A stretch of 64,000 nt of DNA from Bugula neritina (taxonomy: Eukaryota; Animalia; Bryozoa). Position numbers and translations under genes: made by a program. The DNA lies in assembly GCA_964035545.1 (NCBI GenBank), contig OZ037770.1:10298973-10362972 (forward strand). Reading direction: 5' to 3'. The notes below the pieces were generated by a model. It did not search any database, had not been told where the DNA came from, and saw nothing but the letters and a program-made list of their open reading frames with translations. Shown here piece after piece: positions 1,357 through 58,817 of this stretch (within the stretch, counting starts at the first letter, position 1; each line of letters opens with the position of its first letter).

Positions 1357-3072
1357 ATGGCGGAGGCCGCAGTGGAAAAAGTTGTGTGTGGGTTCTGTTT
1401 ACTTGAAGAAAATTTAGAGAATCCCAAGTGTCTACCATGTGGTCATGTACACTGTTTACTGTGTCTTACTCGTAATGTTGATGTGAATGACATGATCAGG
1501 TGTCCCTGGTGTAGGTAAGTTGGTTTTATATAGACAGAGCTGAGACATACTGTTGGTAAAGAGTTAATGATTTCACCTTATACCAAATTATTGCCTTCCC
1601 TTATATGTTGTTTCAAACATTACAAAATAATCATGTGTTCTGCACAGAGAAGTGTTTGATGTGAGAGTGGAAAGTCTTCCATCTGCTGATATAGAGGACA
1701 ACTCCGTATCATGTGACGTGTGCACTAAGAAAGGGATAGAGAAAGTACCAGCAGTTATATACTGCACTGTGTGTCGTAAACTCTTCTGCAGAAAACATGA
1801 TGAGGTATTTATTTGATAATACAACTATTAATTACTATTCAAGTTATGCACCATGCTTTTTGTAAGCCTATTACGTTTGTTTTTTCTTTGAGATATAGTT
1901 CATGTTAAATATGTCTTCTGTTATATTCAGTCACATGATGACACCAGTGATGACCACCAAAAGATGACCATCACTGACTACAGAATACAGGCCAAGAGAA
2001 TGGAGAAAAGAGTTTGTCCCAAACACACAGCATATCCCTACATTCTAGGATGTAAACTCTGCATTCAGCTGTTCTGTGTGCAGTGTGCATCTTCAACTAA
2101 CTTATGTGTTGGAGGTATGGGATTCTTGTGGTTTTATTTTATGCTGTAATTATTTGTTAACTTGTAGTTTGATTTATGTAACTTTTAGTTTTTTGGTAGT
2201 TGAAGATAATGCATTTGTTAACTTTATAATTGGACTTGAATCTTTTTAAATAAATGTCAAAATGTAGAAATTTTTCACAGAAATTAAATAGTAAAAACGA
2301 CTTGGCTGAGAAAATGCCATGACAGAGTTGGAAAAGTCATATTTGATTAATAGGTATTGATGTTAGAATATCTTGACCCTATTTTATTATTCTCTTTTTC
2401 ATGTAGCATGTTTTGTCATTATTTTACTCTAGTCGTCGTCTGTTAGCAGACTTAAATACTAAATTTTACACCAGTAACTTGATTTTATTGGCTATATTCT
2501 GTATATAGTAAATTTTCTTCCATTGGAGCTCAACCAGTATTTGTTCAAACTTGTGTAAACTCTAATCATTCGAAATTATTTTTTTACAATAAATCTGTAA
2601 TTTGAAAAATAACTGACTTGTGCAGATTGGAATCAATCTATATTGTATTACACAGATTCTGAGCATAAGCTGGTTAATTTGGATGACCTAATTAAAGACC
2701 TGATCAATATTGATGAATTGACTTCTGCAGAAGACAAGATGTCCGACCACTTCAAACAATTATCTCAAACTTTATCTGATTTTGATACTGAGACCAGCAA
2801 ATTGTTAAATATTCTTCATACACAGCGAGATGAACATGTAAGATAGTTATTTGTGTAATAAATTCAATATGATTAGGTTTTTAAAACATGCCTCAACTTG
2901 ATATTTTCTAAGCAGTCACTTCTTTGTTGAATGGTGACTTTTAGCATGTAGACATTCTATAGTGTCCTTATAAGTCACAATATTTTCTAGTCTGTTCTGA
3001 CCAACAGAACTTTTTTCACAGTCCTGAAAGTAATTAAGGGGATTTATATTATAAATATATATATATATATAT

Positions 3073-3122
<50 letters not shown>

Positions 3123-3139
3123 TATATACATATATATAC

Positions 3140-3171
<32 letters not shown>

Positions 3172-6100
3172 TATAAGCTGCCACTTCAGCATTGGTCAAT
3201 GACCAAAAGCACAAAAATGCTTTCAAATTCTTTTTTTCCGAAATTTATCATAAAGAAATGTTTTTTTTTATTTTTTTTCGGAATGCTAATTAATATGTGT
3301 GCTTATATCAAAATATTTATCTCCTAAAAGAACAGTTCCATAACATTGTTGGAATTTTATGTAGTAGTCAAACTTGAAATTTGTATTGACTTTGCTCTCT
3401 ATATTATGATCTAACTAAATCCCTACTAGGAGGAAACAACCCTTAATTGTAAATTGAGTACCAGGGGTATTGCAAAACCATTTTTTGTAATTGTAAGTTA
3501 TGTGCATCTTCTAACAAAAGGAAAACTTTGAGAGAAGTGGGTACAGCCAACTTTTCTTCTTCACTTCTTTAGCTGCACTGACTCATACCATAACGAAAAT
3601 AGGTAACAGTTAAAAAGCTATTGCCATAAAGCTTTCAAAAAAAAGCACCTGTCACACATGTTATCAAATGTATGCTTTAGTTGACTGAAGTGAGACTAAA
3701 GTATGAGAAACTGGAGAAGGAATTCTTAGCTAGTAGAAAGAAGACTAAAGAGGAACTGAACAGATACATGGAGAGAGAAGTTGAAACTGTTTTGTCTCAA
3801 CTGAGTAACAGTAGAATGAAGATAGAAGCTCAACTTAGACAAAACCATCAGGTGTGTGTAGAAGTTAAAATGTTATATCCTCAGCAAAGCTGAGTTATGT
3901 TTACTAGGTTCCTGTTTTGTGATGGTTTTATATAATTATTGTAACTATCGATGTTTTGTAGACCTATTCATTCGCTTAGAAAGCAAGCAATGATGTCACT
4001 GAGCATAAGTGTACCGTTCATTCAGGATTAGCAATTTTAGAATTTCAACCAGTTGTCAGTCTGCATCTATTCACTTTAAACCTGAATACCAATATGGTTT
4101 ACAAAAATTTGTTTAATTTTTTTTATTCTCAATAGTGCAAGGAACTTATATATTAGTGTACGTAATGTGATACTGTTTTTCATACAATGATATATATGTA
4201 CATAATACTGTGTGCGTTACAAATTTACCATCTTTCACTTCAGTCATGAATATATTCTGTTTCAGTTATAAAAAAAGTTACAAAGAAATGTGAAGTATGT
4301 CTTTGTTATTGTGTATCTGCTTAGCAACTGTTATATGTTATATTATATACAGCGTGTTGTACTAATTAGCAATATCCACTGCTAGTAATACGTTTGATGC
4401 AGAATATTATGAGCAGCCGTAGAGAGATATGAAGTAGGTCATGGTAATTGTGTATCTGTCTAACAACTGTTCATATTTGGTCACATGTTACAGGTGGATC
4501 TGGTTAGAGGATTTGCAGAGATTAAAGACAGAATACAGAGACTGATATCTGTTGAGATACCTAAACTAGAGCTGTGTGATGTCATGTCTCTAAAGGTCAA
4601 AGGTTAGTATACTAAACTAGAGCTGTGTGGTGTCGTATCTCTAAAGGTCAAAGGTTAGTATACTAAACTAGAGCTGTGTGATGTCATGTCTCTAGAGGTC
4701 AAAGGTTAGTATACTAAACTTTAGCTGTTTGATGTCACTTCTCTAAAGGTTAAAGTTAATAATTCTGCAATCAAGCTTGGTATGTGTAGTAAAATTCTCT
4801 AGCTGGTGAGCTGAATTTTTGACAAGATTTTCCTTAGTTTGCTGTTTCCTAATAGACCATGCATGGTAACCTCAGCCAATCAGGTTGTGTACCAACTCAA
4901 AAATCACCGGCTTTCCATGTACCGATCTCAGCGAGATAGATCCATGGAAAGACGGCAAAGATAGATCTCCTTCGATCTGAGCGGGTCGGTCTGTCGAGCT
5001 CGAACTCAGATCGATCTCATGTCAATAAGACCATGGAAAGACGCCAGATCGATCTGAGAAGTAGAAAAAGACTGCGAGCTACAATGTTGTCTGCTAATAA
5101 TAATGATAACTTATTGATAATTACTAAGCAAAGTATTAAATAATCATGATAACCGCTTTTTCAGATGCCAAAACTTTGACTTTCAGTACAATGATTAAGA
5201 AAACTCAATTATATGCAGTAGAACGTAAAAAAATGGGAAAATTCAAATTGAATTTAAATGACTATCAAAACTTAGTTTCATTAGCTGTTTTCTTTGTAAT
5301 TTTAAGCCTAACAGTCCTGTAAGTTTATTAATAATCTGCAAGACAGCCATTAATTTTATATAAGCTGTCAAGCTAAAAAATTAAAACTAATTATTTTAAA
5401 TTGGCCAAATTACCATACACTGAAAGCTTTGCTGCGTATAGTTTATAGCTGGGATTAAATTTTAGACTACTACCATCTTGTTTTCAACAGTAGTAGGTTT
5501 AATCACTCAAATAGGTGAACAAATTATACTTTTAAAGTATCCTTCACTTAAGAGGAGGCAACTTCGCGAGATATATCTGACACTCTTATGGAAAAACGAT
5601 CGATCTAAGCACATTTTTCAGATCGATCTCAGCGAGATCGATCTGAGATCGGTACATGGAAAGCCCGTGAATATCTCCACTATAACTTATATCAGGTTTT
5701 GAAAGCTCAAGTGCAAAATGCATGCTTTTAAAAAACAGCTCTCCAACTTTTATGCATTGTTGTATTCCATATCCAAGTGTATGAGTTTTGAGTTCATTTT
5801 GTAAACTATTAAAATTGATTGTTAAAAAGAAAAATTAAAAACTACATGTCTGCAAGAATACCCTGGTACAATTTCGCCACAACCTCAGCTGTTTCTGCAT
5901 AACATACTTTATGGCTCTTATATTGACATGGTGGTAAATTACTTGGTTTTATAGCGGCTGGGTAAAATTCAAACACTGAAATTTGAACACAAGTCTGATT
6001 GCCGAGTTTTACATGACCAGTTGATACTTGTATTTTGATTGGCCTAATATTTCACACTGTAGTTTATCTGAGATGACACTTCCCGCTTTAGGGATGCTAT

Positions 6101-8701
6101 TATAGGCATTCGTATTGTGAAATCTGTTTATTGAAAGAAATATATTAGCTTACGTCACTATGCCAACTTTCTTACAAAAATTGTAATAAAATATGCAGCT
6201 ACAACTTAGGCGACTTCATGGTAGACACTGCTTGGAACTTTAAATCAACCACTGCTGTCACTTGTTAGTATGGTAAATCAATAGCGAGAGCGTAACACTG
6301 TAATGTTAGTGCTACCCTATATTCATCAGTTCTATTGTAGAATAGTATGTTAGGAACGTATAGGACATAAGAACATTAGTCTAGGGCAGTGGTTCACAAC
6401 CTGGGGGGAATTTATACGTTTAAAGGGGGAATTTCGACTGAAAAATTCACACAATTTGTTGAAGACTTTTTGAGCTCTTGCAAGTTACATGTGTAAGTTT
6501 TCACCTTAGTTCATCAATATAATCAAACCATATTCTGCAATCTCAGTTTACTTCTAAATGAATGTGTTTATTAATCGCTCTACCCTAACTTCTCTCTGTG
6601 CTACTTCGAAGGGAGGTCAAAAAATCTGCCAAAACCAACAGGCCAACTTTCAGCAGCCACGCAAGTCAATCTCTATGAACTGTATACTACTTACTTAGTG
6701 AATATATATATATATATATGATACACTAAATAATCTGAACCTAAGAATGCAGGAGTGCAATCATTGCATATTATTGCATTTCATAGCAGCATCAATGTAT
6801 TTAAAGTTGTACTAAAGTGGTGGCATCTATCACAAAAATGCTGTCGTTCCCCGGAATCGGATGAACTTTTATAGGAAAAGAACCTGTTCTAATTTTAGGT
6901 AAAATTTCACACTAGTGTTAAATTTTCAAACTGCTGTGTGTTTTATAACATAATAACAAGATAATATAACTGTATTATGATAATTACATTATATGCAAAT
7001 ATAATAGAACAATATATATTGCATTGTATCATATATAATCATTATGTCAGTCGTAAGTTTTTTTTGAAAGAGGGAAACTAATAGTCAACATTTGTGAAAG
7101 GGGGAAATAGTGTGAAAAAGGTTGGGAACCACTAGCCTAGGGTCTGTTTGTATGTAGAGCAGTAGCACAGTCACAGCACATTCACACTACCTGCTCTATC
7201 TTGTCTATCAAACACATGAGTTGCAGTGATAATAATCATTTTGTGATTATGATTATTGACTAAAGAAAAAATGGAAATGCTAAAAGTTTGTTTGTGGAAG
7301 CAATGGATAGATGATAGATAGTTTAGTAAGAGGTGTACGATATGCTGTATTACAATAGTAGCGACATAGGCCATATGCGTGTGTGTGTGTATATGTGTGT
7401 ATGTAATATGAACAATAGTTCCAACAGTGTCGCCCGCTGACTTTCTCTTAACTTGCTTAGTATTACATTTTACATTGTAGAAGAGAGGAGAGAAATAGAA
7501 GCAGAACTGGTTCCTGCAGCAGACATGATTATTAGCTTAGATCAAGGAGTGACAACTCCTACTCTTCCTAAATCTCTCAAACTCATACAGTCTGTTGATG
7601 TTTCTGATAGCTGTTTGTCTGTCTGTAAAAATGAGGATAACACTTATGTAGGACTAGGTAATGGTGCAGGAATAGACAGAATAAATGAGCGTTTCAGTGT
7701 TTCCAAGTCTTTTGGTACTGTTGCTAAAAATGTAACTGGGATAGCAGTTTACACCAACCAGTTGTATGCTTTAGTTTGTGTCTGTGATAATGATGATGTG
7801 TATGTCAGTGATCCTCATTGGGAGGTACATGTGTATGATCTTACTGGGAAACAGGTGACCAGCTGGTCTCACCATGATAATAGTGTATTTGGTATAAACA
7901 AACTTGCTTTTGTTGATGACCAGGTTGTAGTTCCTGATAGACACAGTAAAAGACTTACAATCTACTCTCTTACTGGGGAGGTAATTAAACATGTCTCCTG
8001 CCCTCTACTCAGTGATAGTTATACAGCAATATGTGCAACAGACATACATTGTGTAGTAGTTTCTGACTCTGGTTCCTCTCAAGTATTTAAATTAGACTTG
8101 ACAACAGAGAAAGTCATCTGGACATGCAAGGATGTATCTCAACCAGAAGGTGTGACCTGCTATAGAAGTAAATATATTCTTGTGACTAACTGCATCAGTC
8201 AAACTACCGTCTGGATACTGGATGTGAAGACAGGTTAGTGATTTCCGCTTTTTAATGCGTGCATGAAAAGCATATGTATATTTGACATGTAAAATTTGTT
8301 CCATATATAAACTACATGTTCCTGTATGATTATACTGAATATTGTATACACCAAACACAATCAGTGGGTTAGTGTGTTGGTAAAGCCATTTGATGACAAT
8401 ATTCACAGCTCTACTGTATTTTTATGGCGATCATATCCTCGTGTCATGGCATTGATTTCTCAGTATTACAGGCATATTGATTATAACTTTGTTAGCACAT
8501 AACAAAATATACTAATACAACACTAAACAGTAAGATTTATTGAAGCAGTGAATTTGATATACTGTAGGTACACAGTTATCTATGCTCAAAGATCCAACTG
8601 TTAGGAGTATTAGTAATGTACTTGATCTCCATGTGTATAAAGACATGCTGATTGTACCCAGAAATTTGGAGAAGAAAGTTCTATTTTACCAGCTCAATTA
8701 A
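1357..8701 (+). CDS. TRIM-type E3 ligase (RING-Bbox-Bbox-coiled coil-NHL-like propeller), array copy 1, ~615 aa
   Basis: Exons 1357-1514, 1648-1804, 1931-2114, 2656-2837, 3681-3851, 4494-4602, 7481-8233, 8568-8701, all GT-AG, sum 1848 nt in frame. RING CGFC..CGHVHCLLC..CPWC; B-box1 CDVC..CTVC..CRKH; B-box2 CPKH..CKLC..CVQC; helical exons 4-6; beta-strand repeats (VHVYDLTGKQV, LTIYSLTGEVI, VFKLDLTTEKV) in exons 7-8. Confidence 0.88.
3055..3171. repeat. (TA)n microsatellite with TACA interruptions
   Basis: Direct reading. Confidence 0.95.
4561..4760 (+). repeat. 51-bp tandem repeat of exon-6 3' end and splice donor, 4 units (copy 1)
   Basis: Unit CTAAACTAGAGCTGTGTGATGTCATGTCTCTAAAGGTCAAAGGTTAGTATA; last unit degenerate. 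Confidence 0.92.
4905..5669. mobile_element. MITE with CACCGGCTTTCCATGTACCGATCTCAG TIRs, intron 6 of copy 1
   Basis: TIRs at both ends, multiple internal GAGATCGATCT palindromes, AAT on both flanks; second family member at 31626-32402. Confidence 0.85.
6387..7134. mobile_element. hAT-type MITE in intron 6 of copy 1
   Basis: CAGTGGTTCACAACCT ... AGGTTGGGAACCACTA TIRs; 8-bp TSD GTCTAGGG / GCCTAGGG. Confidence 0.8.
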
Positions 8702-10850: not shown

Positions 10851-13800
10851 ATGGCTGCAGCAGAAGAAGTTGTGTGTGGATTCTGTTTACTTGAAGAAGG
10901 TTTAGAGAATCCCAAGTGTCTACCATGTGGTCATGTACACTGTTTACTGTGTCTTACTCGTAATGTTGGTGTGAATGACATGATCAGGTGTCCCTGGTGT
11001 AGGTAAGTTAGTTTTGTATAGACAGAGCTGAGACATGCTGCTGCTAAAAAGATAATGATTTCACCTCATACTGAATTATTGCCTAACATTACATATAATT
11101 TCAATTATTACTGAATAATTATGTATCTTGTCACAGAGAAGTGTTTGATGTGAGAGTGGAGAATCTTCCATCTGCTGATGTAGAGGACAACTCCGTATCA
11201 TGTGACGTCTGCACTAAGAAAGGGATAGAGAAAGTACCAGCAGTAACCTACTGTGCTGTGTGTCGTAAACTATTTTGTAGAAAACATGAGGAGGTAATTC
11301 TCTCACATAACTTTTTTTAAATCAGTTTATGACTGTTGCTGTGTTCATTTTGCTGTTGCTAAGCTTTTCAATGTAAATAATTAGCTATAAATTTACTTTA
11401 GTTTAGAGTGCTTTTATTTTATTTATGACACCCTTCACAATGTGACAATTTTTTTAAATACATATTCTGTTATATTCAGTCACATGATGACACCAATGAT
11501 GACCACCAGAAGATGACCATCTCTGACTACAGAATACAAGCTAAGAGACTGGAGAAAAGAGTTTGTCCCAAACACACAGCATACCCCTACATACACGGAT
11601 GTAGAGTCTGTGTACAGCTGTTCTGTGTGCAGTGTGTATCTCAGACTAACTTGTGTATTGGAGGTAACTCTACTGTTCTCATATCCTTTCATATCAATAC
11701 TTTAGAGCTTTTTACTTGTGTTGTAGTATGTTTGAGTATTTAGTCTTAGTAGGCCACATTGTCTATCAACACTGTCTATTCATTCTTATTTCGGAAGCTT
11801 GAATACTGTTATTGTGTATTCATCACATAAAAGAAGGTAGAAATCAATACAGAAGTGATGCTTCAAACAAGTTGTGGGTTCATTAGTTCTGGTATTCTGG
11901 CTCCAATATTATTGTTACAGTAAAATCAAGAATATCCCATTAAACTCAAGATTTTAGAGTCTTCTTAGCTGAGTCTATTTAATTGCATATGTGTGCAGTT
12001 TTATGATTTGTTTCATTACTCGATATCCTTTCTGGCAAGCCAATCAATGAAGCGTATTGGAAATCTTGTGGCAGCAGTAGCCAATGAAATTTGAGCCATT
12101 CTTATGCGAAGGAATTTATTCACTCCTATAAAATTCAAATTGTGGCAGTGTTAGTTGGAGTTCATAAATCTCAAGAGTTCAAATAGGGTTCAATCAGGAA
12201 AGACTCGGTCTCATTACTCATAATATCTAAGTTAATCCACAACCTAAATACATGTTTAAATAGTGCTGGGTGGCATGGGAGTTTGTTAGGTAATTGAAGT
12301 ATATAATGTCAAGGAAAGGCAATTTTATTAAAATATTAATAGTGCTGTTGTGCTCCTGTGCCCTGTTTGAATTAGTCGTTAGCCAGATTTAAGAAAAAAC
12401 CTTCTATCAGGGGCTCTCCCACAGAGATGGCGACTATAAACTTTTAATAATGGTGATATTGTCATTGTTATTCAGGCAAATATTAGTATACAATTATTAA
12501 TGGTGATATTGTGCTCCTGTGACCCATTTGAATAAGTCCTTAGCCTGATTGAAGAACAAACTCTTTCCATCAGGGGTTTTCTCACAGGGATGACGACTAT
12601 ATATTTCTAAGAATTTTATTAATTGTGATATTGTCATTGTTATTCAAGCAAATATTAGTGTACATATGATTACATCACTGTGATGTAGATTCAGAGCACA
12701 AGATGGTTAGTCTAGATGAACTTATCACACAGTTGACAAACATAGAAGAACTGATAACTACTGAAGATAAGACATCTCATCTCTTCAAACAGATATCTAA
12801 GGCTATATCTGACTTTGATACTGAGACTGAAGACTTGCTGAGTATTCTTTATACACAGAGAGATGAACAGGTGAGATTCTGAAGAACACAGGCTACTCTC
12901 ATGTGTTTTCATAGTTCTGTAAGATATTATTGGTTGGTAAATGTCTAAGAAATTGTGATTAGTTTGTTTTACTGTAATTCTCATAGTATACAGCCAGACA
13001 AAGTGAAAGGGCCTAACTGATTGTTGTAAGTCTAGGAAGTGCTAAGCAATAATCCAGCTAAGGGATCTGAATTTATTTTAATTTGTATTTGTTTTCCCAT
13101 TTCAAAATTAGAGTGGGGATGTTGATTTTGTACCACAACTTTTTTATAGGCTTGAGGCTGTTTTCATTTATTGTAATTGAGCAATTAATATTTATAAGCT
13201 TTTGCTTCAAGTTCAATTTACATTTGCTCAGATAGTTTTAATTCTTCTATAAGGTACATGAAATAAATCTGACAGACTTGTGTCATGCCTTTGGTTTTTT
13301 CTTTAATCAACTTCTCCAACCGCCTAATTGAATTTTGAACGATTTTTGGTAATCAAGTTTTCAATCAGCCTATTAAGATTTTAAACACTTATAACAAGGG
13401 TACCTAGAATTAAAGCTATCAGTTTTTCCTATTTGTTTGTACCACTAAAAATGTGCGAATACCCATCAATGGTTTAAAAAGGCTTTTTATTTATTGGCTG
13501 GTAAGAAAAGCTGCATATCACTATAAACTGAGTCATTGTTTGATTTGACTAAAAGTGTATTTTCTGCGTCTTGATTTTATTTTGCCAGGAATAGTGTTGA
13601 CTTTTCTGGCTTGCAGTGACTTCAACTTTGGAAAGTTTCACCATAGGTTTTACGTATAAGTTATGTTTTAGTTGACTGAAGTGAGACTGAAGTATGAGAA
13701 ACTGGAGAAGGAATTCTTAGCTAGTAGAAAGAAGACTAAAGAGGAACTGAACAGATACATGGAGAGAGAAGTTGGAACTGTTTTGTCTCAACTGAGTAAC

Positions 13801-15965
13801 AATAGAATGAAGATAGAAGCTCAGCTTAAGCGAAACAACCAGGCATGTAGAATTTTTTCAGTTATCATAGCAGTATAGTGACTATTTGAATTAGTAACAA
13901 TAAATACTTGTAGTAAAGAAAACTAGAAATTATTTTTGATGATATCTACTTGTAATATATTATACCAGGTAGATTTTTTTTAAAATTTATCATTTCATTT
14001 TATTTTTTGCTACATCAGTTGGTAGACCACACACGTTGATATAATGCTCTAGATGGTGAATCTGGCATATTGAGTTATGTTTAGTTGAAGCACTACTAAG
14101 TGTATTTTGTTTTTGTGTACTGTAGGTGGATCTGGTTGAAGGATTTGCAGAGATTAAAGACAGAATACAGAGACTGATATCTGTTGAAATACCTGAACTA
14201 GAGCTGTGTGATGTCATGTCCCTTAAGGTCAAAGGTTAGTATACTAAACTAGAGCTATGTGGTGTCATGTCCCTAAAGGTCAAAGGTTAGTATACTAAAC
14301 TAGACCTGTGTGATGTCATGTCTCTAAAGGTCAAAGGTTATACAACCAAGCAAGTTATGCATCTCCTATAAGTTGCACTTTTTGACAAGATTTTAATTCC
14401 TTATCTGTTGTATTGGTATTTCAATGCAGGTATAAGATAGATACAAGTCCAGTGAACACAGACCAGAATATAGTCACCTTAGCTATTATAGTAAATTATG
14501 GAAATAGCTGGGAGGAAGCAATACATTAAATATGTATATAATAAGAAGAATAGTTCCTACAGTCTCCCTTACTAACTTTCACTCAACTTGTACTTTGTAG
14601 AGGAGAAGAGAGAAATAGAGGCAGAACTGGTTCCTGCAGCAGACATGATTATTAGTTTAGATCAAGGAGTGACAACTCCTACTCTTCCTAAATCTCTCAA
14701 ACTCATACAGTCTGTTGATGTTTCTGATTACTGTTGGTTTGTCTGTAAATATGAGAGTAACACTTATGTAGGGCTGGGTAATGGTGCAGGGATAGACAGA
14801 ATAGATGAGAGTTTCAGTGTTTCCAAGTCTTTTATTTCTCTTACCAACTTTGTAGTTGGAGTCACAGTACATAGGAATAAGCTGTATGCTCTAGAGCTTA
14901 TCAGCAGCACTAATTGGGAGGTACATGTGTATGATCTTACTGGGAAACAGGTGACCACCTGGTCTCATCATGATAGTAGTGGGTATGTAAACAAGCTTGC
15001 TATTGTTGATGATCAGGTTGTAGTTCCTGATAGACGCAATAAGAGGCTTACAATCTACTCTCTTACTGGGGAGGTAATTAAACATGTCCCCTGCCCTCTA
15101 CTCAGTAATAGTCGTACAGCAATATGTGTAGCAGACAGACATTGTGTAGTAGTTTCTAACTCTGGTTCCTCTCAAGTATTTAAATTAGACTTGACAACAG
15201 AGAAAGTCATCTGGACATGCAAGGATGTATCTCAACCACAAGGTGTGACCCGCTATAGAAGTAAATATATTCTTGTGACTAACTGCAGCAGTAAAACCAC
15301 CATCTGGATACTGGATGTGGAGACAGGTTGGTGATTGAAGTATTATAGTCTATGTGTACAAAATGTATTTATATTTGACATGTAAACTTTGTTTCATATA
15401 TAAACTACATGCTACTGTAGATACATTGTATAAAAATGCTTGATTATGCTGTATATATACACTACATATTACTATTTGATTATCTTGTATATATTATATA
15501 CACAAACCACAATCATTGGATGGGTGTGTTAGTAAGCCATTTCATCAAAGTAATAGCAGCTCTACTGTATATTATGATGTTTAAAACTATAATAATTTCT
15601 CTTAGCTACAGATACTTTCTAGTATGCTGTACAGTGTACACTGTTTACACTTGTGTAAAGTAAAGTATGTATTATTGAGTAATAGTTTTCTAAGTGACTA
15701 TTCAACAGTGCAGTTTAAAAGTTTATTCCCTAGTGTCATGGTATTAATTTCCCAGTATTACAAGTATATTGAATATAATTTTGTTAGCACATGACTAAAA
15801 TATATTGAAACAGTGACTTGTTATATTGTAGGTAGACAGTTATCTATGCTAGAAGATACAACTGTTAGGATTGATAGTAATGTACTTGATCTCCATGTGT
15901 ATAAAGACATGCTGATTGTACCCAGACGTGATGAGAAGAAAGTTGTATTCTACCAACTCAACTGA
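10851..15965 (+). CDS. TRIM-type E3 ligase with NHL-like propeller, array copy 2, ~604 aa
   Basis: Exons 10851-11002, 11137-11293, 11480-11663, 12689-12870, 13672-13842 (GC donor), 14126-14234, 14601-15326, 15832-15965; sum 1815 nt in frame; same exon phases as copy 1. Confidence 0.87.
14193..14342 (+). repeat. 51-bp exon-6 donor repeat, 3 units (copy 2)
   Basis: Same unit as in copy 1. Confidence 0.92.
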
Positions 15966-20255: not shown

Positions 20256-20256
20256 G

Positions 20257-20275
20257 TGGTGGCAGCGGTGGGATT
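20257..20275 (+). other. Primer-binding site complementary to tRNA-Leu 3' end
   Basis: TGGTGGCAGCGGTGGGATT one base after the 5' LTR; reverse complement AATCCCACCGCTGCCACCA is the 3' end of metazoan tRNA-Leu(AAG-type) plus CCA. Confidence 0.88.
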
Positions 20276-20316
20276 TCTAGCTACTGTATGAGAACAATGA
20301 GAAGTATTAGAACATC

Positions 20317-42000: not shown

Positions 42001-45000
42001 ACATTTTCTCCTCCTTCCCTCTCCGCATTCCAGTCACAAACTTCTGCCATGCACTTTAGCTACAGTTCATAGAAAAAGGTTCACTCGGAATTTTGTAGTA
42101 CATGTTACTAAAGCTTTTTTCTGATGGAGGTTCCCATGAAGTGAAAATAAAAAAAACATTTTTAGTTCTAAACAGTAATGAAAATGGTACTGTAAAGATG
42201 AGTGATGCAGAAATAAGTGAGGGATGTGCGTTTGATTTTGCCTCCCCTTGCTATCTGTGGTTGTACAAACTGTACAGCTAAAAATGATTTTTGCTGTAGA
42301 TCTTGAAGAATATTTTTATTTATTTGTGTATATTAATTAAATTAAGATCAGATGCAACCAAATTAACAAAGTTTCAATATATTTGCTGTGTCCCACCCAG
42401 TGGCCCATTGTACCCATTATCACTAAAAACTGAGTCACTGTTTGACTTGACTCAGAGTATTCTGCGGGTACCTTGATTTGATTTTGCTAGCAATAAACTT
42501 GACTTTTCTGGCTTGCAGTGACTTCAACTTTGGAAAAGTTCACTCCAAATCTTACTCGTAAGTTATGTTTTAGTTGACTGAAGTGAGACTAAAGTATGAG
42601 AAAGTGGAGAAGGAATTCTTAGCTAGTAGAAAGAAGACTAAAGAGGAACTGAACAGATACATGGAGAGAGAAGTTGGAACTGTTTTGTCTCAACTGAGTA
42701 ACAGTAGAATGAAGATAGAAGCTCAACTTGAGCGAAACAACCAGGCATGTAGACTTCAGTTATCAAAGCAATATAGTGACTGTTTGGATTAATAAAATAG
42801 GTGGTAATGGAAACTAGAATTTTCTTTTGACAATGTATACTTATAATATATTTTATCGGGCACGTTTATTTTTGTAAATTTATTGTTTCATTGGATTTTT
42901 TGCCACATCAGTTGGTAGACGACACATGTTGATATAATCCTCTAGATCAGTGGTGTCCAACCTTTTCATAGGGAGGGCCACTGAAAGAGAATATTTCGGT
43001 GGCCCTCATTCCTATCTTTACATGGTGAGGGCTACACTGGAAACTTTATGTTGAGCTGGGGGCCACAGCAACAGTATTTATCAAATTATATTATTCCAAA
43101 TTCTCAGAAATCATTATACAATTGAGTCCCAATAGTTACAGCAGGCTGCATGTTTTGCACCATATGTAGAAATAAGACATTTAAAATGGTGTTTTTCACT
43201 CTAATTCATGTTGGTAGACCACACATGTTGCTCTAGATGGTGAATCTGACATATTGACTTATGTTTAGTTGAAGCACTACGAAGTGTATTTTGTTTCTGT
43301 GTACTGTAGGTGGATCTGGTTGAAGATGTGAGGTATATATTGGTTATTGTGTATCTGTCTAGCAACTGTTCATATGTGGTCACATGTTACAGGTGGATCT
43401 GGTTGAAGGACATGCAGAGATTAAAGAGAGAATACAGAGACTGATATCTGTTGAGATACCTAAACTAGAGCTGTGTGATGTCATGTCCCTCAAGGTCAAA
43501 GGTTAGTATACTAAACTAGAGCTGTGTGATGTCATGACCCTTAAGGTCAAAGGTTAGTATACTAAACTAGAGCTATGTGATGTCATGTCTCTGAAGGTCA
43601 AAGGTTAGTATACTAAACTAGAGCTGTGTGATGTCATGTCTCTAAAGGTCAAAGGTTAGTATACTAAACTAGAGCTGTGTGATGTCATGTCTCTAAAGGT
43701 CAAAGGTTAGTATACTAAACTAGAGCTGTGTGATGTCATGTCTCTAAAGGTCAAAGGTTATACAAGCAAGCTAGTCAAGTTTCTTTGATAGGCTGTACTT
43801 TTTGACAAGATTTCAATTCCTAATCTGTTGTATTGGTATTTCAATGCAGGTATAAGATAGATACAAACCTCATATACATAGATCAGAATATAGCCACCTT
43901 AGCTATTATAGTAAATTATGGAAATAGCTAGGAGGAAGCAATACATTAAATATGTATATAATAAGAAGAATAGTTCTTACAGTCTCTCTTACTAACTTTC
44001 ACTCAACTTGTACTTTGTAGAAGAGAGGAGAGAAATAGAGGCAGAACTGGTTCCTGCAGCAGACATGATTATTAGTTTAGATCAAGGAGTGACAACTCCT
44101 ACTCTTCCTAAATCTCTCAAACTCATACAGTCTGTTGATGTTTCTGATTACTGTTGGTCTGTCTGTAAATATGAGAGTAACACTTATGTAGGGCTAGATT
44201 GTGGTCCAGGGATAAACATAATAGATAAGAGTTTCAGTGTTTCCAAGTCTTTTATTTCTGTTGCCAACTGTGTAGCTGGAGTCACAGTACATAAGGATAA
44301 GCTGTATGCTCTAGAGCTTATCAACAGCAGTAATTGGATGGTACATGTGTATGATCTTACTGGGAAACAGGTGACCAGCTGGTCTCACCATGAAAGTAGT
44401 TGGAGTGTAAACAACCTTGCTATTGTTGATGATCAGGTTGTGGTTCCTGATAGAGGCAGTAAAAGACTTACAATCTACTCTCTTACTGGGAAGGTAATTA
44501 AACATGTCCCCTGCCCTCTACTCAGTAGTAGTATTACAGCAATATGTGCAGCAGACAGACATTGTGTAGTAGTTTCTGACTATGGTTCCTCTCAAGTATT
44601 TAAATTAGACTTGACAACAGAGAAAGTCATCTGGACATGCAAGGATGTATCTCAACCAGAAGGTGTGACCTGCTATAGAAGTAAATATATTCTTGTGACA
44701 AACCGCAGCAGTAAAACCACCATCTGGATACTGGATGTGGAGACAGGTTGGTGATTCCAGTATTGTAATGTATGTGTACAAAATATAATATATTTATATT
44801 TGATATGTAAACATTGCTCCATGTATGTACTACATGTTCCTGTATGATTATACTGTATGTTGTACACACCAACCACAATCAGTGGGTTAGTGTGTTAGTT
44901 CACCATTTGATGACAATATTCACAGCTCTACATTATTTTAGAACATTCAATATTCCCTACTGCCAAATCATTAATTTCTCTGTATTACAGACATATACAT

Positions 45001-45250
45001 TATATTTATATATTTATATATTATATTATATTATATTATATTTTTTATTGGCAAAATGTAATAACATAACACTGACCACAAAAAAATATTGAAGCATTGG
45101 ATTTTACATACTGTAGGTAAACAGTTATCTATGCTAGAAGATACAACTACTAGGGGTTTTAGTGAAGTACCTGATCTTCATGTTTATAAAGACATGCTGA
45201 TTGTACCCAGACGTTCAGAGAAGAAAGTTCTATTTTACCAACTCAACTGA
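39028..45250 (+). CDS. TRIM-type E3 ligase with NHL-like propeller, array copy 4, ~606 aa
   Basis: Exons 39028-39185, 39333-39489, 39795-39978, 40817-40998, 42574-42744 (GC donor), 43393-43501, 44021-44746, 45117-45250; sum 1821 nt in frame. Confidence 0.87.
41322..42418. mobile_element. Non-autonomous DNA element in intron 4 of copy 4
   Basis: About 1.1 kb absent from homologous introns of copies 2 and 5; GGGG(C/T)ACAA motifs at left end and TTGTACCC at right end. Confidence 0.5.
42948..43209. mobile_element. Partial hAT-type MITE in intron 5 of copy 4
   Basis: CAGTGGTGTCCAACCTTTT left TIR following CTCTAGAT; host sequence GTTGGTAGAC..CACATGTTG..CTCTAGAT duplicated on both sides; absent from copies 2 and 5. 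Confidence 0.55.
43460..43762 (+). repeat. 51-bp exon-6 donor repeat, 6 units (copy 4)
   Basis: Same unit. Confidence 0.93.
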
Positions 45251-48823: not shown

Positions 48824-49134
48824 GTAGGCTTGTAGGCTTGTAGGCTTGCAGGCTTGCAGGCTTGCAGGCTTGCAGGCTTGCAGGCTTGCAGGCTTGCAGG
48901 CTTGCAGGCTTGCAGGCTTGCAGGCTTGCAGGCTTGCAGGCTTGCAGGCTTGCAGGCTTGCAGGCTTGCAGGCTTGCAGGCTTGCAGGCTTGCAGGCTTG
49001 CAGGCTTGCAGGCTTGCAGGCTTGCAGGCTTGCAGGCTTGCAGGCTTGCAGGCTTGCAGGCTTGCAGGCTTGCAGGCTTGCAGGCTTGCAGGCTTGCAGG
49101 CTTGCAGGCTTGCAGGCTTGCAGGCTTGCAGGCT
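48824..49134. repeat. (GCAGGCTT)n 8-bp tandem repeat, about 38-39 units
   Basis: Direct reading; first three units GTAGGCTT. Confidence 0.97.
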
Positions 49135-51398: not shown

Positions 51399-54300
51399 AT
51401 GGCTGAGGCTGCAGTGGAAAAAGTTGTGTGTGGATTCTGTTTACTTGAAGAAGGTTTAGAGAATCCCAAGTGTCTACCATGTGGTCATGTACACTGTTTA
51501 CTATGTCTTACTCGTAATGTTGATGTGAATGACATGATCAGGTGTCCCTGGTGTAGGTAAGTTAGTTTTATATAGACAGAGCTAAGATATACTGTTGGTA
51601 AAGATTTAATGAATTACATCATATTATGTTTTACCTTATAATGATTTATTGCATTTTGTTATATATAGTTTCAATTATTACAAAGTAATTACGTCTCTTG
51701 TCACAGGGAAGTGTTTGATGTGAGAGTGGAGAATCTGCCATCTGCTGATGTAGAGGACAACTCCGTATCATGTGACGTCTGCACTAAGAAAGGGATAGAG
51801 AAAGTACCAGCAGTAACCTACTGTACTTTGTGTCGTAAACTATTCTGTAGAAAACATGAGGAGGTAATTCCCTCACATAACTCTTTTTAAATCAGTTTAT
51901 GACTGTTTATTTTGTTGTTACTCAGCTTTTAAATGTGATTGTCACAATCAGCTATAAATTTACTTCAGTGCCAAAAGCTTTTATGTTTTTTATGGCATTC
52001 TCCAGAGTAGGACAATCTTTTAAAAAAAATTCCGCTATTCATAGTTGAATTATATTTATCAGTAAATATATGTGACCTGGCACCACAAAACAAGGGATGT
52101 ATATAAAATGTTGAAAACTTAGTTATTACTATGGAGTGATAGAGCAGATATTTTCAAACATTTTGCACTTTAATTGAAGTCTCTAGCCTAAACAGAACTC
52201 GAGATATTAGTATTTAAAAACTTTAACGTTTTTAGAATTTCTAAATTACTGTTTCGAGAAAATCGCGTTTAAAGTTGGCAACTCTAGAATAAGTTGAGAA
52301 ATATTTGTTTACAATTTACAAGCCTTAGCAACGGGTCTTTGTATATTAGGAATAGTGACAAATTTGGTATCAAAATAATTGTGAAAGTTTGGGCGTTCTG
52401 TTAAACTAAATTTCATGCTGCCTCAACATAAAATTAGGTCAAATATTGCTGCCAAACTTTTTGTCTAATTTATTTGTCAATTTGCTTTTTACTTTGTTTA
52501 ATGATTGAAAGGTTTAACAATTCCAGCAAAGAAGAGAATGTTTCAGCAAGTTTGTGTGTTGAGATATTTAAGTTAGGTATCCAAGTCAGCAGGAAGTCAT
52601 ATAAAACAAAATGGCAGCTGCTTCCTGTTATACATTGAATATCTTCCTCTCCTCTAATATATTGTGTGATATATCAAACTGCAGCTATTGAGCTGTGCTG
52701 TTTCATAGTTATTGCTTAATGAGTAGAACGCTTATGAAAAAATTAATTTGACTATTATGAGGTCATTCGAGATTCATTCATAAATATCTTTATAATCTCT
52801 AACTGCATCTAAATTTAGCAATTGATGTTGAAAATATAAACATAAAATCAGCTATTAGAACTTTTGAGTTTTATTAGGCATTATTATTCACATTTAAAAC
52901 ATCAAATACATTATTATTAAAAACTAATTAAAAGCAGTAAAAAATCCAGCCTGAATACAACCATTATGCTTGAATTAACTCTAATTAGGAAAAGAAAATT
53001 AGGTAGCTTCTACGGTTTTTGCAAAAAAGGCACTTTTCATCTTTCTACTTCCTTGGTCTTCATAATATGAGTTTATGGAGTATGGACACATAACATCATG
53101 TATGGGGCAAAAGCTTCATCACTATTATCAGCTGATTTTCTAGCAAGTATAGATGCTGCTACTTGACATCCATCATGCCAATCTACCCATCTATTGTCTA
53201 TTCCAGAGCTGCAAGTACAATGTTGACTTTTTTAAATAACAAAAGAAAACGGTAGCTTGATTAGAAATTATACACAGTTATATTATAAAAATATAGTTGG
53301 TTAAACACTCTTGTGGTACTATTATGGCAGCAGTTAATTGTCATCCTGCATTTTATCAACATTTAAATTTATTGAATTAAACAGAACAATTTAAATTTAA
53401 AAAATTGTTGAAAATTTTCAAGCACATCATTAAAAGACTGCAAACCTTTTTTATGAATGAAATAAGCAGAAGCCATAACCTTGCAAGCCAAAATTCAGAG
53501 CGTCTACATTAGAAGTATTAGATTGATAGGTAGTAGAGTTGTGTAGGTATAAGTCTTCACTCTAATGCTCTCATAAGTCCACTTTCTAAGATGTACAGAA
53601 TATCGGACTATTCTATATTAACATAGTATTATCAGTAAAATTACACATTATGCACTTAAATATCTAGCATATCTGCAATTGGCAATTTTGAAGCAATGTT
53701 TTTCGATAACTATTAACCACTCAGGCATTTAATTGAGTAAAAAAGCTAGCTAAATGCAACTGAATATATTAGACATTTACTATAAAATCAATTTGAATTC
53801 AATAAATTACTTTAAAATATGAATAAATTTTTGCTCATCCTTTATAATAAAATTAAAAAGTTTAGACTATTTATGCATTCAGTTAGTGTTACTACTCACT
53901 AAATAAGACTAAAAGTAACTTACTGAAGAACTAAGTCAGTCAACTATAGAATCACCATGAACTCGCATTAATATTTCATCATTATACTCATTTAAATTTA
54001 ATCATATTTACCATTACAATTTGGTTATAGGTGATGCTTTTATCAATATAAATAGAATTATCAATTGAGTTTTGACAGTATCTGTAAGCCTGCATATTGT
54101 GATAAAAGATTTTATCATTATATTTAAAATCAAACTTTGAGCTGATTTAAAATTGGTAGTTTGACTAGTAGGCCTAATGTTAATAGTAATAGTAATCAGT
54201 AACTGTATTGACAAAATCTAAGACAGGCTAAAAGTTACTAAGAGTAAGTCCAATATAAATTTAAATATCAACTATAAAATAAATCAATAGATATAATACC

Positions 54301-57300
54301 ATCAGTAATGAGTATCAAGTTTTAAGACCGAAGGCGAAACTCAGAGTCAGACTCAAATAGTGAATTTATAATTAATATTATTATTATTAATTATTACTTA
54401 TACTTATAGTTATACTATTATTATTATAGTAATAATATTATTGAGCTACATTTGGTTTTACTACCAAATACCAGTATCAGTAAATCATGAATGATATTCA
54501 TTATGATTATCATTATGAGTAACCGTACCTGATACTGTGAGTCATAGTGAGAGTCATTTAAATAGTTACTACTTATAGTTATTAGTATAGAATAGACATA
54601 CTGATACTGATACTCCTACTCCTAGTGACAGTATCAGTATGAATAATAATATTATTAAATTGATAACTACAAATAATCCTGGCAACAATTCTAAGTTAGT
54701 AGCATAAATGATGGTTTTGAGTATAATTACCTGTATTGTTGTGATTTTCAAGCTTGAACGCTAAAGATAAAGATTAAGTTTAGCATTTATTACCAAAGGG
54801 CAAAACAGCTCAGTAGCTAACTTTGGATGGACCACGATGAAAAACTAAAACTAGCCTTCGATTTTAAATACGATGCTTCTGACAATGCGAAGAAAGAGAT
54901 GTAAGCTAAATTCATTTGATAAAAATAAATTTGCAAGATCTCACGCTATAAAAATGACTAAAATTGTCTTATTTCTTTATTTGATAACTTCGCAATTTTT
55001 TCATCATTTAAAAAATTGAATGCCTTAGTTACCAACTTTAAATGCAATTTTAGAGCTGAAGGAATCATCAAATGCTTACGAAAGTATGATTGTTGAAATC
55101 CTTGGATTTTTTTGTATTAGAAAAGTTCAAAACCTAAAAACTGGAAATTAATTTCAAATTTAAGTATTTCCAAATTAAAGCTTCATTTACTACACTTTAT
55201 AAACGCCGCCACATCCCCGGTTTTGTAGCGACTGGTCACATATATTCTGTTATATTTAGTTACATGATGAAACCAGTGATGACCACCAGAAGATGACCAT
55301 TTCTGACTACAGAATACAAGCCAAGAGACTGGAAAGAAGAGTTTGTCTCAAACACACAGCATATCTTTATGTACACGGATGTAGAGTCTGTACTCAACTG
55401 TTCTGTGTGCAGTGTGTATCTCGGACTAACTTGTGTATTGGAGGTAACTCTTCTGCTTTTATATCCTTTCATATCATTACTTTATAGCCTTTTACTTGTA
55501 TTTACTGTATGTTTGAGTAATTAGTCTTAGGAAGCAGCCGTGGTCTAGGGGTTAGAGCCTAGTAAGTATGAGCCCAGACAAAGGTCATTGGTGATTTTAA
55601 GAATAGTACCCAGTCATAATTGCTCCTGTGCCTCATATAAATAAATCTTTATTTCGATTTAAAAACCCTCTTCCATCAGGGGTTTTCTCACAGGGATGGC
55701 AACTATATATTTGCGTAAGTTTCATTAATTGTGATATTGTCATTATTATTCAAGTAAATATAGTTGTACACATGATTACATCATTTTGATGTAGATTCAG
55801 AACACAAGATGGTTAGTCTAGATGAACTTATCACACAGTTGACAAACATAGAAGAACTGATAACTACTGAAGATAAGACATCTCATCTCTTCAAACAGAT
55901 ATCTAAGGCTATATCTGACTTTGATACTGAGACTGAAGACTTGCTGAGTATTCTTCATACACAGAGAGATGAACAGGTGAGATTCTGAAGAACACAGGCT
56001 ACTCTCATGTGTTTTCATAGTTCTGTAAGATGTTATTGGTTGGTTAATGTCTAAGAAACTGTGATTAGTTTATTTTACTGTAATTCTCATAGTATACAGC
56101 CAGACAAAGTGAAAAGGGCCTAACTGATTGTTGCAAGTCTAGGAAGTGCTAAGCAATAATCCAGCTAAGGGATCTGAATTTATTTTATTTTGTATTTGTT
56201 TTCCTATTTCAAAATTAGAGTGGGGATGTTGATTTTGTACCACAACTTTTTTATAGGCTTGAGGCTGTTTTCATTTATTGTAATTGAGTAATTAATATTT
56301 ATAAGCTTTTGCTTCAAGTTCAATTTACATTTGCTCAGATAGTTTTAATTCTTCTATAAGGTACATGAAATAAATCTGACAGACTTGTGTCATACCTTTG
56401 ATTTTTTTGGTAATCAAATTCTCAAACAGCCTAATTCAATTTTATAGATTTATAGCAAGTGTACCTAGAATTAAAGCTATCAATTTCCTCTGTTTATTTG
56501 TACCACTAAAGGTCTGTGAATACCCATCAATGGTTTAAATAGGCTTTTTATTTATTGGTTTGTAAAAAAAGTGCATATCGTTACAAACTGAGTCATTGTT
56601 TGATTTGACTCAAAGTGTATTTTCTGCGTCTTGATTTTATTTTGCCAGGAATAGTCTTGACTTTTCTGGCTTGCAGTGACTTCAACTTTGGAAAGTTTCA
56701 CCATAGGTTTTACGTATAAGTTATGTTTTAGTTGACTGAAGTGAGACTGAAGTATGAGAAACTGGAGAAAGAATTCTTAGCTAGTAGAAAGAAGACTAAA
56801 GAGGAACTTAACAGATACATGGAGAGAGAAGTTGGAACTGTTTTGTCTCAACTGAGTAACAGTAGAATGAAGATAGAAGCTCAACTTAAGCGAAACAACC
56901 AGGCATGTAGACTTCAGTTATCAAAGCAATATAGTGACTATTTGAAATAATAACAATAAATACTCGTAGTAAAGAAAACTAGAAATTATTTTTGATGATA
57001 TGTACTTGTAATATATTATACCAGGTACATTTTTTTTTAAAAATTATTATTTAATTTAATGTTTTTGCTACATCAGTTGGTAGACCACACATGTTGATAT
57101 AATGCTCTAGATGGTGAATCTGGCATATTGAGTTATGTTTAGTTGGAGCACTACTAAGTGTATTTTGTTTTTATGTTACTATGATTTGTAGGTGGATCTG
57201 GTTGAAGGATTTGCAGAGATTAAAGAGAGAATACAGAGACTGATATCTGTTGAGATACCTGAACTAGAGCTGTGTGATGTCATGTCTCTAAAGGTCAAAG

Positions 57301-58817
57301 GTCAATTCCTAATCTGTTATATTGGTATTTCAATGTAGGTATAAGATAGATACAAACCTCATGTACATAGACCAGAGCATAGTCACCTTAGCTATTATGG
57401 TAAATTAATAGAAATAGCTAGGAGGAAGCAATACATTAAATATGTATATAATAAGAAGAATAGTTCCTACAGTCTCCCTTACTAACTTTCACTCAACTTG
57501 TACTTTGTAGAAGAGAAGAGAGAAATAGAGGCAGAACTGGTTCTCGCAGCAGGCATGATTATTAGTTTAGATCAAGGAGTGACAACTCCTACACTTCCTA
57601 AATCTCTCAAATTCTCACAGTCTGTTGATGTTTCTGATGAGTGTTATTCTGTCTGTAAATATGATGGTAACACTTATGTAGGGCTGGGTGGTGCAGGGAT
57701 AGACAGAATAGATGAAGGGCTTGGAGCCAAAGTATCATTTGCTAAGGCAGTTGCTTCGGATGGAGTGATAGTCTATAAAAATCTGTTGTATACTCTACAG
57801 TATATCAGCAGCACTAATTTGGAGGTACATGTGTATGATCTTACTGGGAAACAGGTGACCAGCTGGTCTCATCATGATAGTAGTGTAAGTGAAAACAAAC
57901 TCGCTATTGTTGATGATCTGGTTGTAGTTCCTGATAGAAGCAGTAAAAGACTTACAATCTACTCTCTTACTGGGGAGGTAATTAAACATGTCCCCTGCCC
58001 TCTACTCAGTGATAACACCGTAGCCATATGTGTAGCAGACAGACATTGTGTAGTAGTTTCTGACTATGGTTCCTCTCAAGTATTTAAATTAGACTTGACA
58101 ACAGAGAAAGTCATCTGGACATGCAAGGATGTATCTGAACCAGAAGGTGTGACCCGCTATAGAAGTAAATATATTCTTGTGACTAACTGCAGCAGTAAAA
58201 CCACCATCTGGATACTGGATGTGGAGACAGGTTAGTGATTCCAGTATTGTAATGTCTGCATGCAAGACATATGTGTGCAAAATATAATATATTTAACATG
58301 GAAACTTTGCTCCATATGTATACTACATAATACTGTATGATAATACATTAAATTGTATACACAAACCACAATCAGTGGATGGGCTGTTAGTAAGCCATTT
58401 AATAATAAAATTCACGTCTCTACTGTATGTAATGGTCTTTATAATATAAATACATAGCCACATTTACCTTCCATTTGGGTTGTACACTATTTACACATTT
58501 GCTGCACAGTGCACTTTACAAATTGATAAGTATATTGTTAGGAAGTTGCTATTATAGGCCCATTGACTGTATATATTGAAACACATGACTAAAATATATT
58601 AAAACAATATGCAGTCACAAATGTTCTCCTCAGTGTCAGGATACATATTATATTCAAGCTTGATTGAACTTGTTATACTGTAGGTAGACAGTTATCTATG
58701 GTAAAAGATACAACTGTTAGGAGTGATAGTAGTGTACTTGATCTCCATGTGTATAAAGACATGCTGATTGTACCCAGATGTCAAGAGAAGAAAGTTTTGT
58801 TCTACCAACTCAACTGA
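51399..58817 (+). CDS. TRIM-type E3 ligase with NHL-like propeller, array copy 5, ~604 aa
   Basis: Exons 51399-51556, 51707-51863, 55260-55443, 55795-55976, 56732-56902 (GC donor), 57192-57300, 57511-58230, 58684-58817; sum 1815 nt in frame; intron 2 enlarged by a 3.2-kb insertion. Confidence 0.85.
52071..55240. mobile_element. 3.2-kb non-autonomous DNA transposon in intron 2 of copy 5
   Basis: Imperfect TIRs TGTGACCTGGCACCACAAAACAAGGGATG / CATCCCCGGTTTTGTAGCGACTGGTCACA, TATA on both flanks; absent from other copies; left-end fragment also at about 50673-50815. Superfamily not assigned. Confidence 0.75.
55532..55710 (+). mobile_element. SINE-like fragment in intron 3 (related pieces at ~12350-12600 and ~40650-40740)
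   Basis: A-box-like GCCGTGGTCTAGGGGTTAG then shared body TGCTCCTGTG...CCATCAGGGG..CTCACAGGGATGGC in copies 2, 4 and 5. Confidence 0.4.

Follow-up and report, generated by a model that had tools for sequence, protein, structure and literature searches.

The window analyzed here, 64,000 nucleotides (nt) of the bryozoan Bugula neritina (contig OZ037770.1, positions 10,298,973 to 10,362,972, numbered below from 1), contains five tandem genes of the tripartite motif (TRIM) type whose products end in a beta-propeller. Purifying selection acts on the E3 ligase half of these proteins and on the propeller framework, and positive diversifying selection acts on one set of propeller loops. The five proteins are divergent TRIM-NHL-type ligases with a TRIM32/Thin-like layout, and of both this architecture and this evolutionary mode we are highly confident. 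The genes do not stand as a system by themselves; they represent one stretch of a far larger family that recombination has shaped. As a whole, the locus is probably best explained as part of a lineage-restricted family of TRIM-type E3 ligases with a diversified recognition face, in conflict with fast-changing targets.

Comparison of the window with itself resolves five units in the same orientation, with starts near 1357, 10851, 28776, 39028, and 51399, and similarity among them sits in short blocks that are the exons. Splice sites were read from the sequence of copy 1, carried to copies 2 to 5 by local alignment, and checked by script. This yields five plus-strand genes of eight coding exons each, with every frame open: copy 1 at 1357..8701 (615 amino acids [aa], from a 1848-nt coding sequence without an internal stop), copy 2 at 10851..15965 (604 aa), copy 3 at 28776..34352 (606 aa), copy 4 at 39028..45250 (606 aa), and copy 5 at 51399..58817 (604 aa), each span running from the ATG to the end of the stop codon. 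The original prediction had placed its array between 1357 and 58817, which coincide exactly with the first ATG and the final stop, and its five intact paralogs are confirmed by eight open exons and splice signals in every copy. In the bryozoan Watersipora subatra, annotated full-length relatives are laid out alike and also possess a C-terminal part homologous to exon 8, which supports the splice between exons 7 and 8.

Exons were searched and folded singly, with exons 7 and 8 as separate partitions. Exon 1 encodes a RING finger with the pattern C-x2-C-x13-C-x-H-x2-C-x2-C-x12-C-x2-C (C3HC4), and its eight ligands are kept in the translations of all five copies; on the isolated 53-aa exon, Pfam RING models give expectation values (E) of 3e-4 to 1e-3, under their curated cut-offs. 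Exon 2 is a B-box-1-like finger (Pfam ANCHR-like B-box, E 8e-5, below cut-off), and exon 3 is a B-box 2 that passes the PF00643 zf-B_box threshold with 24.7 bits against 24.1. Exons 4 to 6, about 150 aa rich in charged and heptad-like residues, occupy the position of the TRIM coiled coil, and a coiled coil is presumed there. No filamin domain was matched by Pfam in exons 5 to 7, and the distance between exon 5 and the first strand of the propeller is only about 65 residues; nor did Pfam find a PRY/SPRY (B30.2) domain, the C-terminal domain being a propeller instead.

The propeller is supported by two structural models. The AlphaFold model of copy 2 exon 7 (m89f4bd33e074; predicted local distance difference test score [pLDDT] 92, predicted template-modeling score [pTM] 0.85) contains five four-stranded blades. 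The corresponding region of a Watersipora homologue that includes the exon 8 equivalent (P0033:340-604) was modeled with 24 strands (pLDDT 95.7, pTM 0.92), making six blades, with the first N-terminal strand closing blade 6. In copy 1, exon 7 (7481..8233) thus encodes the linker, the closing strand D6, and blades 1 to 5, the last as strands A to C, and exon 8 (8568..8701) encodes strand D of blade 5, strands A to C of blade 6, and the stop, as assigned by alignment to the homologue model. In fold, the P0033 domain comes closest to NHL domains, namely those of Thin, TRIM2, TRIM3, Brat, and Mei-P26 (template-modeling score [TM] 0.78-0.81 in both directions), with seven-bladed WD40 proteins at 0.5-0.7, and the exon 7 model of the window gene has the identical top matches. 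Against the sequences of the PDB, the family profile reaches Thin at 3e-11, Brat at 1e-10, and TRIM3 at 1e-10 (3e-11 to 1e-6 for TRIM-NHL matches overall). The proposal of a TRIM architecture carrying a propeller thus holds on every count: eight RING ligands, two B-boxes, confident models, and TRIM-NHL proteins as the top structural and profile matches.

What drew attention to these genes was a set of nine short propeller segments said to differ among otherwise similar copies. All nine sets of variable peptide strings are found as written across the five copies, copy 1 having one additional residue in the second, and the codon series given as examples (CAC/CGC/GGC/GGC/AGC and TGC/TGC/TAC/CGC/TGC) are exact. 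In 38 further close paralogs from the same contig the same columns vary and the strands are nearly invariant, a pattern well outside what chance would produce. Nei-Gojobori pair counts over the five copies give ratios of nonsynonymous to synonymous substitution (dN/dS, or omega) of 0.12-0.54 for exons 1 to 6 (0.31 for the RING exon); exon 7 comes to 0.85 and exon 8 to 0.71. For the propeller overall, the ratio is about 0.85-0.9. The larger set used for selection tests drew exons 7 and 8 from 40 close paralogs on the contig of the window. Within exon 7, the first half rejects the maximum-likelihood tree of the second, and vice versa (delta lnL 515 and 185, approximately unbiased test P <1e-6), which makes single-tree methods unsafe, and a single-tree analysis of this exon was therefore dropped for tree-free pair counts and per-blade trees.

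For the pair counts, loop classes were fixed beforehand from the secondary structure of the model: top loops (D-A and B-C), bottom loops (A-B and C-D), strands, and linker. Across 19 disjoint nearest-neighbor pairs, dN/dS is 1.59 in the top loops (binomial P(>1) = 2e-4), 0.58 in the strands, and 0.55 in the bottom loops, and the proportion of synonymous differences (pS) is about 0.10 in all three classes alike. The top-loop value is 1.58 (P 1.5e-3) when all pairs involving a window copy are excluded and 1.45 in the five window copies alone. The originally listed segments reach 1.83 (P 1e-3) in 15 paralog pairs that include no window copy, against 0.62 for the rest of the propeller, which, together with the site models below, upholds the expectation that dN/dS exceeds 1 at these positions. 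Clusters elsewhere in the genome behave in the same way: top-loop dN/dS is 1.58 (P(>1) 5e-3) in the C8 cluster at 10.1 Mb, whose members are about 41% identical to the window genes, 2.07 (P(>1) 2e-3) in the C3 cluster at 30.8 Mb, and 1.68 (P(>1) 0.07) in the C8 cluster at 5.6 Mb, which offers three pairs only, with strands and bottom loops at 0.27-0.72 in these clusters.

Site models were run as a self-written codon mixture with GY-type rates, F3x4 frequencies, and seven partitions with their own trees. For exons 7 and 8 of 38 paralogs, the M0 omega is 0.86, and M2a is preferred over M1a with a likelihood-ratio test statistic (LRT) of 266 (P ~1e-58), placing 11.9% of codons at omega 4.2. The same exons of the five window copies give an LRT of 48.4 (P 3e-11), omega being 7.6 for about 10% of their codons, and exons 1 to 6 of the five copies, used as a negative control, give a nonsignificant 1.35.

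If the loops were simply drifting without constraint, and conversion or recombination were mimicking a signal of positive selection, there would be no adaptive diversification to explain. Recombination is strong in this family and is known to inflate site-model tests, and the introns are far more diverged than the synonymous sites of the exons, so dS may be depressed by conversion. Against this, dN/dS from the tree-free counts on pre-chosen loops significantly exceeds 1 in three of the four gene sets. Loops and strands also have equal pS, and a conversion tract that lowers dS must lower dN in those codons too. The bottom-face loops are equally exposed and yet stay at 0.27-0.7, and the control on exons 1 to 6 is clean. 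We regard such an artifact as highly improbable and take the diversification of the top loops to be adaptive.

Twenty-two codons have a probability of omega above 1 that exceeds 0.95. Thirteen of them lie in the pre-fixed top loops, a class holding 23% of all codons (Fisher P 1.6e-4), a further seven are the first or last one or two strand residues adjoining a top loop, and none is in a bottom loop. In copy 2, which serves as the numbering reference, the selected sites of exon 7 (14601..15326, plus strand; residue n at window position 14603+3(n-1)) are 35, 43, 45, 59, 74, 83, 99, 106, 127, 128, 163, 169, 171, 187, 211, 213, and 228. Those of exon 8 (15832..15965, plus strand; residue m at 15834+3(m-1)), placed via the homologue model, are 14, 16, and 18, which fall in the D5-A6 loop and where A6 begins, and 32 and 33 in the B6-C6 loop. 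Selected sites occur in all six D-A loops and in the B-C loops, or their flanking strand ends, of five blades. By the topology of beta-propellers, the D-A and B-C loops share one face, the top, and it is on the top face of the NHL domain that Brat and TRIM71 bind RNA; the RNA-bound Brat NHL entries 4zlr and 5ex7 are among the structural matches. Secondary structure combined with this topology rule therefore supports a model in which the variable and selected sites lie on the single top face. The earlier claim that the variable segments share one face agrees with 20 of the 22 sites in or beside D-A or B-C loops and none in an A-B or C-D loop. Residues at the selected sites are enriched for Tyr (4.1-fold) and Trp (2.9-fold) and also for Asn, Ser, Cys, Gly, and Arg, a make-up typical of binding surfaces.

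Several observations weigh against parts of this account. The Pfam NHL repeat model PF01436 stays below its cut-off of 20, with a best score of 18.5 bits for copy 1 and about 11 for the other copies listed; we call the domain NHL-type and divergent because this model is subthreshold and yet the family profile reaches TRIM-NHL chains in the PDB. The full-length Watersipora relatives likewise have no propeller match above a Pfam cut-off. Blade 6 was modeled on P0033, which is about 40% identical to the window genes, and faces were assigned from secondary structure and the topology rule rather than from three-dimensional coordinates. The top-face assignment fails for selected sites 35 (closing strand) and 74 (strand D of blade 1) and for the near-significant site 51. 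The site-model code fixes relative branch lengths, and residual recombination within blades could inflate its LRT. Finally, the word-index protein search for relatives returned genomic fragments only and no transcripts.

The paralogs are recombination mosaics. Between copy 1 and L032, a paralog lying 100 kb downstream, divergence is 0-0.9% in the linker, in blades 1 and 5, and in exon 8 but 7-15% in blades 2 to 4, and the nearest relative of each window copy shifts from blade to blade, often to a gene in another cluster. Introns 3 to 5 are mostly unalignable between copies, and the neighboring exons are mostly 90-96% identical, exon 4 apart; similar exons beside unalignable introns suggest that exon similarity is kept by conversion, selection, or both. 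The description of the constant exons as almost identical fits the RING exon (95-98% nt identity), exon 5 (94-98%), and exon 6 (94-97%) and fails for exon 4. That exon (2656-2837, 12689-12870, 30038-30219, 40817-40998, and 55795-55976 in copies 1 to 5, plus strand) exists as two deep haplotypes, copies 1 and 3 versus copies 2, 4, and 5, with about 73% nt identity and dS >1.4, the other N-terminal exons being mostly 90-98% identical. The split may be a relic of an older divergence that conversion has erased elsewhere.

The window genes belong to a same-strand array of 14 propeller and 16 RING exons that spans 10.30-10.52 Mb of a 16-Mb contig. Two further clusters of close paralogs lie on this contig at 9.10-9.21 and 11.44-11.60 Mb, and more distant ones lie on other contigs. 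The 216-Mb genome holds at least 151 propeller-exon matches, a lower bound, with internal stops in only 6, and RING exons pair with propeller exons in the same arrays. Alternatively, the array might be made of decaying or unexpressed duplicates, or of alleles assembled side by side. One close paralog outside the window (L019) does carry a stop codon, as decay would predict. On the other side stand eight open exons and working splice signals in all five copies, dN/dS of 0.12-0.54 in exons 1 to 6 and about 0.6 in the strands, significantly below 1, and the rarity of stops genome-wide. Collapsed alleles were rejected from the differing intron lengths and intergenic DNA among copies on one contig. 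This possibility therefore deserves almost no credence, and we treat the genes as intact members of a large family.

In their order of RING, B-boxes, coiled-coil position, and six-bladed NHL propeller, the window genes match the TRIM-NHL proteins TRIM32/Thin, TRIM2, TRIM3, Brat, Mei-P26, and TRIM71/LIN-41. Thin has no filamin domain between coiled coil and propeller, and the window genes, which lack a Pfam filamin match, resemble TRIM32/Thin in this; the TRIM2/3/71 subgroup differs in having a filamin (IG-FLMN) domain at this place. Known TRIM-NHL proteins, however, are few per genome and conserved, whereas this family counts at least about 150 propeller exons, organized in tandem arrays, with positive selection on the putative ligand face and repeats too divergent for the Pfam NHL model. 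TRIM-NHL proteins have been assigned to the slowly evolving group 1 of TRIMs, and in TRIM5alpha and group 2 TRIMs the recognition domain has been described as positively selected in its surface loops, group 2 being reported as absent from invertebrates (PMC2533329).

The evolutionary mode is that of other TRIMs. TRIM5alpha, TRIM22, and finTRIM likewise form clustered, lineage-specific expansions with constant RING and B-box parts, a constant coiled-coil region, and selected C-terminal surface loops, finTRIM being the clustered TRIM expansion of fish with a selected recognition domain. The recognition domain of TRIM5alpha, TRIM22, and finTRIM is a B30.2/SPRY beta-sandwich, whereas that of the window genes is a propeller, and TRIM5alpha differs further in its demonstrated antiviral function. 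The family is thus like TRIM5alpha and finTRIM in evolutionary mode and yet not a member of their group. A second parallel comes from fungi, where the NLRs of the HNWD family, including HET-E and HET-D, have hypervariable positions under positive diversifying selection on the interaction surface of a WD40 beta-propeller and evolve in concert by repeat exchange within and between family members (PMC4986451). The window family shares with them the selected hypervariable propeller surface and exchange among family members. The comparison is an analogy only, across kingdoms, since the fungal proteins join a NACHT NTPase to WD40 repeats and the window genes join RING and B-boxes to an NHL-type propeller; exchange in HNWD genes is also between individual repeats, whereas blades within a window gene are dissimilar and exchange is between paralogous genes.

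The arrays of this family arise by tandem duplication. Exchange between paralogs, by recombination or gene conversion, holds the framework similar and shuffles blades, and about 10-12% of propeller codons, in the D-A and B-C loops of all six blades, are under positive diversifying selection. Each paralog may recognize its own intracellular ligand, protein or RNA, through the top face, and the constant RING/B-box module would link recognition to ubiquitination. Jointly, the genes could form a germline repertoire against fast-changing targets, most likely viruses or other intracellular parasites, agents that we favor by analogy with TRIM5alpha and the group 2 TRIMs (PMC2533329). An immune function is a serious candidate, although we stop short of calling it probable. 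More tentatively still, bryozoans may possess well over 100 intracellular E3-ligase receptors in which the NHL propeller, otherwise a conserved module by which developmental regulators bind RNA, has been turned into a variable, antibody-like surface aimed at viral or parasitic RNA or protein. With similar reserve, we suggest that such a repertoire would diversify by selected point substitution and by blade-scale recombination among arrayed paralogs.

A recognition repertoire could also serve targets other than pathogens, such as allorecognition between fusing colonies, control of symbionts or gametes, or the binding of transposon or endogenous RNAs. The selection signature shows only that a binding face is diversifying. 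Bryozoans are colonial, the Brat NHL structures 4zlr and 5ex7 hold bound RNA, and a young long terminal repeat (LTR) retrotransposon is located within the array. The fungal WD-propeller NLRs, with the same signature, act in heterokaryon incompatibility (PMC4986451). However, a RING E3 ligase with neither signal peptide nor membrane segment cannot act at the cell surface, which is the usual site of animal allorecognition receptors, and a large gene number with family-wide selection is most typical of host-parasite conflict. We consider nonpathogen targets unlikely, if worth keeping in view, and continue to favor conflict with viruses or intracellular parasites.

Clustered TRIM expansions with a selected recognition surface were known already, as was a hypervariable propeller face in fungal NLRs. 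What is new is an NHL-type propeller on the TRIM scaffold, in an invertebrate, and at such a scale, for which our literature searches found no describing paper; they returned no relevant paper on bryozoan TRIMs or on TRIM-NHL expansions in bryozoans, bivalves, or oysters. To our knowledge, no immune receptors have been described in bryozoans, and the immunity of the phylum is essentially unknown; the locus is a candidate for intracellular non-self recognition there. TRIMs are usually divided into an ancient, conserved group 1 that includes the NHL type and a young, antiviral, SPRY-bearing group 2 confined to vertebrates (PMC2533329). This locus breaks that division by showing group 2 dynamics on an NHL-type TRIM in an invertebrate. 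It also provides a natural library of NHL top-face variants, from which one can read which positions of the fold tolerate and exploit change, and an animal counterpart of the fungal propeller-based recognition repertoires.

The family appears to have a narrow distribution. A profile search of 1.84 billion representative proteins returned only 450 matches at E <=1e-3, and the named full-length matches are all from Watersipora subatra, labeled "uncharacterized" or "tripartite motif-containing protein 2-like." By word-index protein search, the closest relatives, at <=86% identity, are single-exon open reading frames (ORFs) on short metagenome contigs of the Joint Genome Institute (JGI). One distant member, on the 1525-nt Logan contig SRR4125604_5838 (L079), has 469 uninterrupted residues that extend over the coiled-coil region and all of the propeller. 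It resembles a spliced transcript because the window genes carry introns in that region, and it may, on this weak evidence, be a transcript of a distant family member. Protein-language-model neighbors form clusters of 60-308 mostly molluscan NHL proteins, some with a B-box. These mollusc TRIM2/3-like clusters are nearest by language-model features, whereas sequence search names only bryozoan relatives, and they suggest parallel expansions in other Lophotrochozoa, to the extent that look-alike scores obtained without alignment can do so.

The exons, all on the plus strand, have the following limits. Those of copy 1 are at 1357-1514, 1648-1804, 1931-2114, 2656-2837, 3681-3851, 4494-4602, 7481-8233, and 8568-8701, the last including the stop. 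Copy 2 has exons at 10851-11002, 11137-11293, 11480-11663, 12689-12870, 13672-13842, 14126-14234, 14601-15326, and 15832-15965; copy 3 at 28776-28933, 29068-29224, 29447-29630, 30038-30219, 30490-30660, 32448-32556, 32852-33577, and 34219-34352; copy 4 at 39028-39185, 39333-39489, 39795-39978, 40817-40998, 42574-42744, 43393-43501, 44021-44746, and 45117-45250; and copy 5 at 51399-51556, 51707-51863, 55260-55443, 55795-55976, 56732-56902, 57192-57300, 57511-58230, and 58684-58817. All acceptors are AG and all donors GT save that of intron 5 in copies 2, 4, and 5, which is GC, the most frequent noncanonical splice donor. Intron 5 is thus GC-AG in these three copies (first bases 13843, 42745, and 56903) and GT-AG in copies 1 and 3, a split that coincides with the grouping of the two exon 4 haplotypes.

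The introns differ in other ways as well. Intron 2 is 3.4 kb long in copy 5 and 126-305 nt in the other copies. A 51-nt tandem repeat at 4561-4755, 14196-14340, and 43460-43760 is a duplication of the final 38 nt of exon 6 and of the donor site that follows, in 3.8, 2.8, and 5.9 units in copies 1, 2, and 4, respectively, and copies 3 and 5 have a single unit. Past the first exon 6 donor, the reading frame immediately runs into a TAG, and splicing from a donor farther downstream would therefore yield a propeller-less product or a target of nonsense-mediated decay. A repeat of about 780 nt (85% identity), probably a transposable element, lies in intron 6 of copy 1 (4904-5674) and, inverted, in intron 5 of copy 3 (31621-32403).

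The window is AT-rich, with a G+C fraction (GC) of about 0.33 and a single GC-rich island at 20-27 kb. A Ty3/gypsy-type LTR retrotransposon (19983-27569) lies between copies 2 and 3, with GC of about 0.55 against 0.33 around it, bounded by 283-nt LTRs that are 98% identical (19983-20265 and 27287-27569). One ORF (20317-24081) encodes protease, reverse transcriptase, and RNase H; the integrase follows a break in a separate ORF (24109-25776) that begins partway into the zinc-binding domain; and a third ORF (25842-26801) is without a match in Pfam. A near-perfect microsatellite (48826-49134), located in the DNA that separates copies 4 and 5, consists of about 39 copies of the 8-nt unit AGGCTTGC, with 99% matches. 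Elsewhere in the genome, dozens of exons resembling the RING exon (33-45% identity) are arrayed at 6.6-7.3 and 4.2-4.7 Mb of C8 with one propeller match, near 7.25 Mb, and may belong to other RING families with a different C-terminal domain. Within the window, a conserved stretch occurs about 2-3 kb downstream of copies 2 and 5 (18166-18516 and 61796-62098) with similar minus-strand open frames; it is probably no gene but a piece of the duplicated unit.

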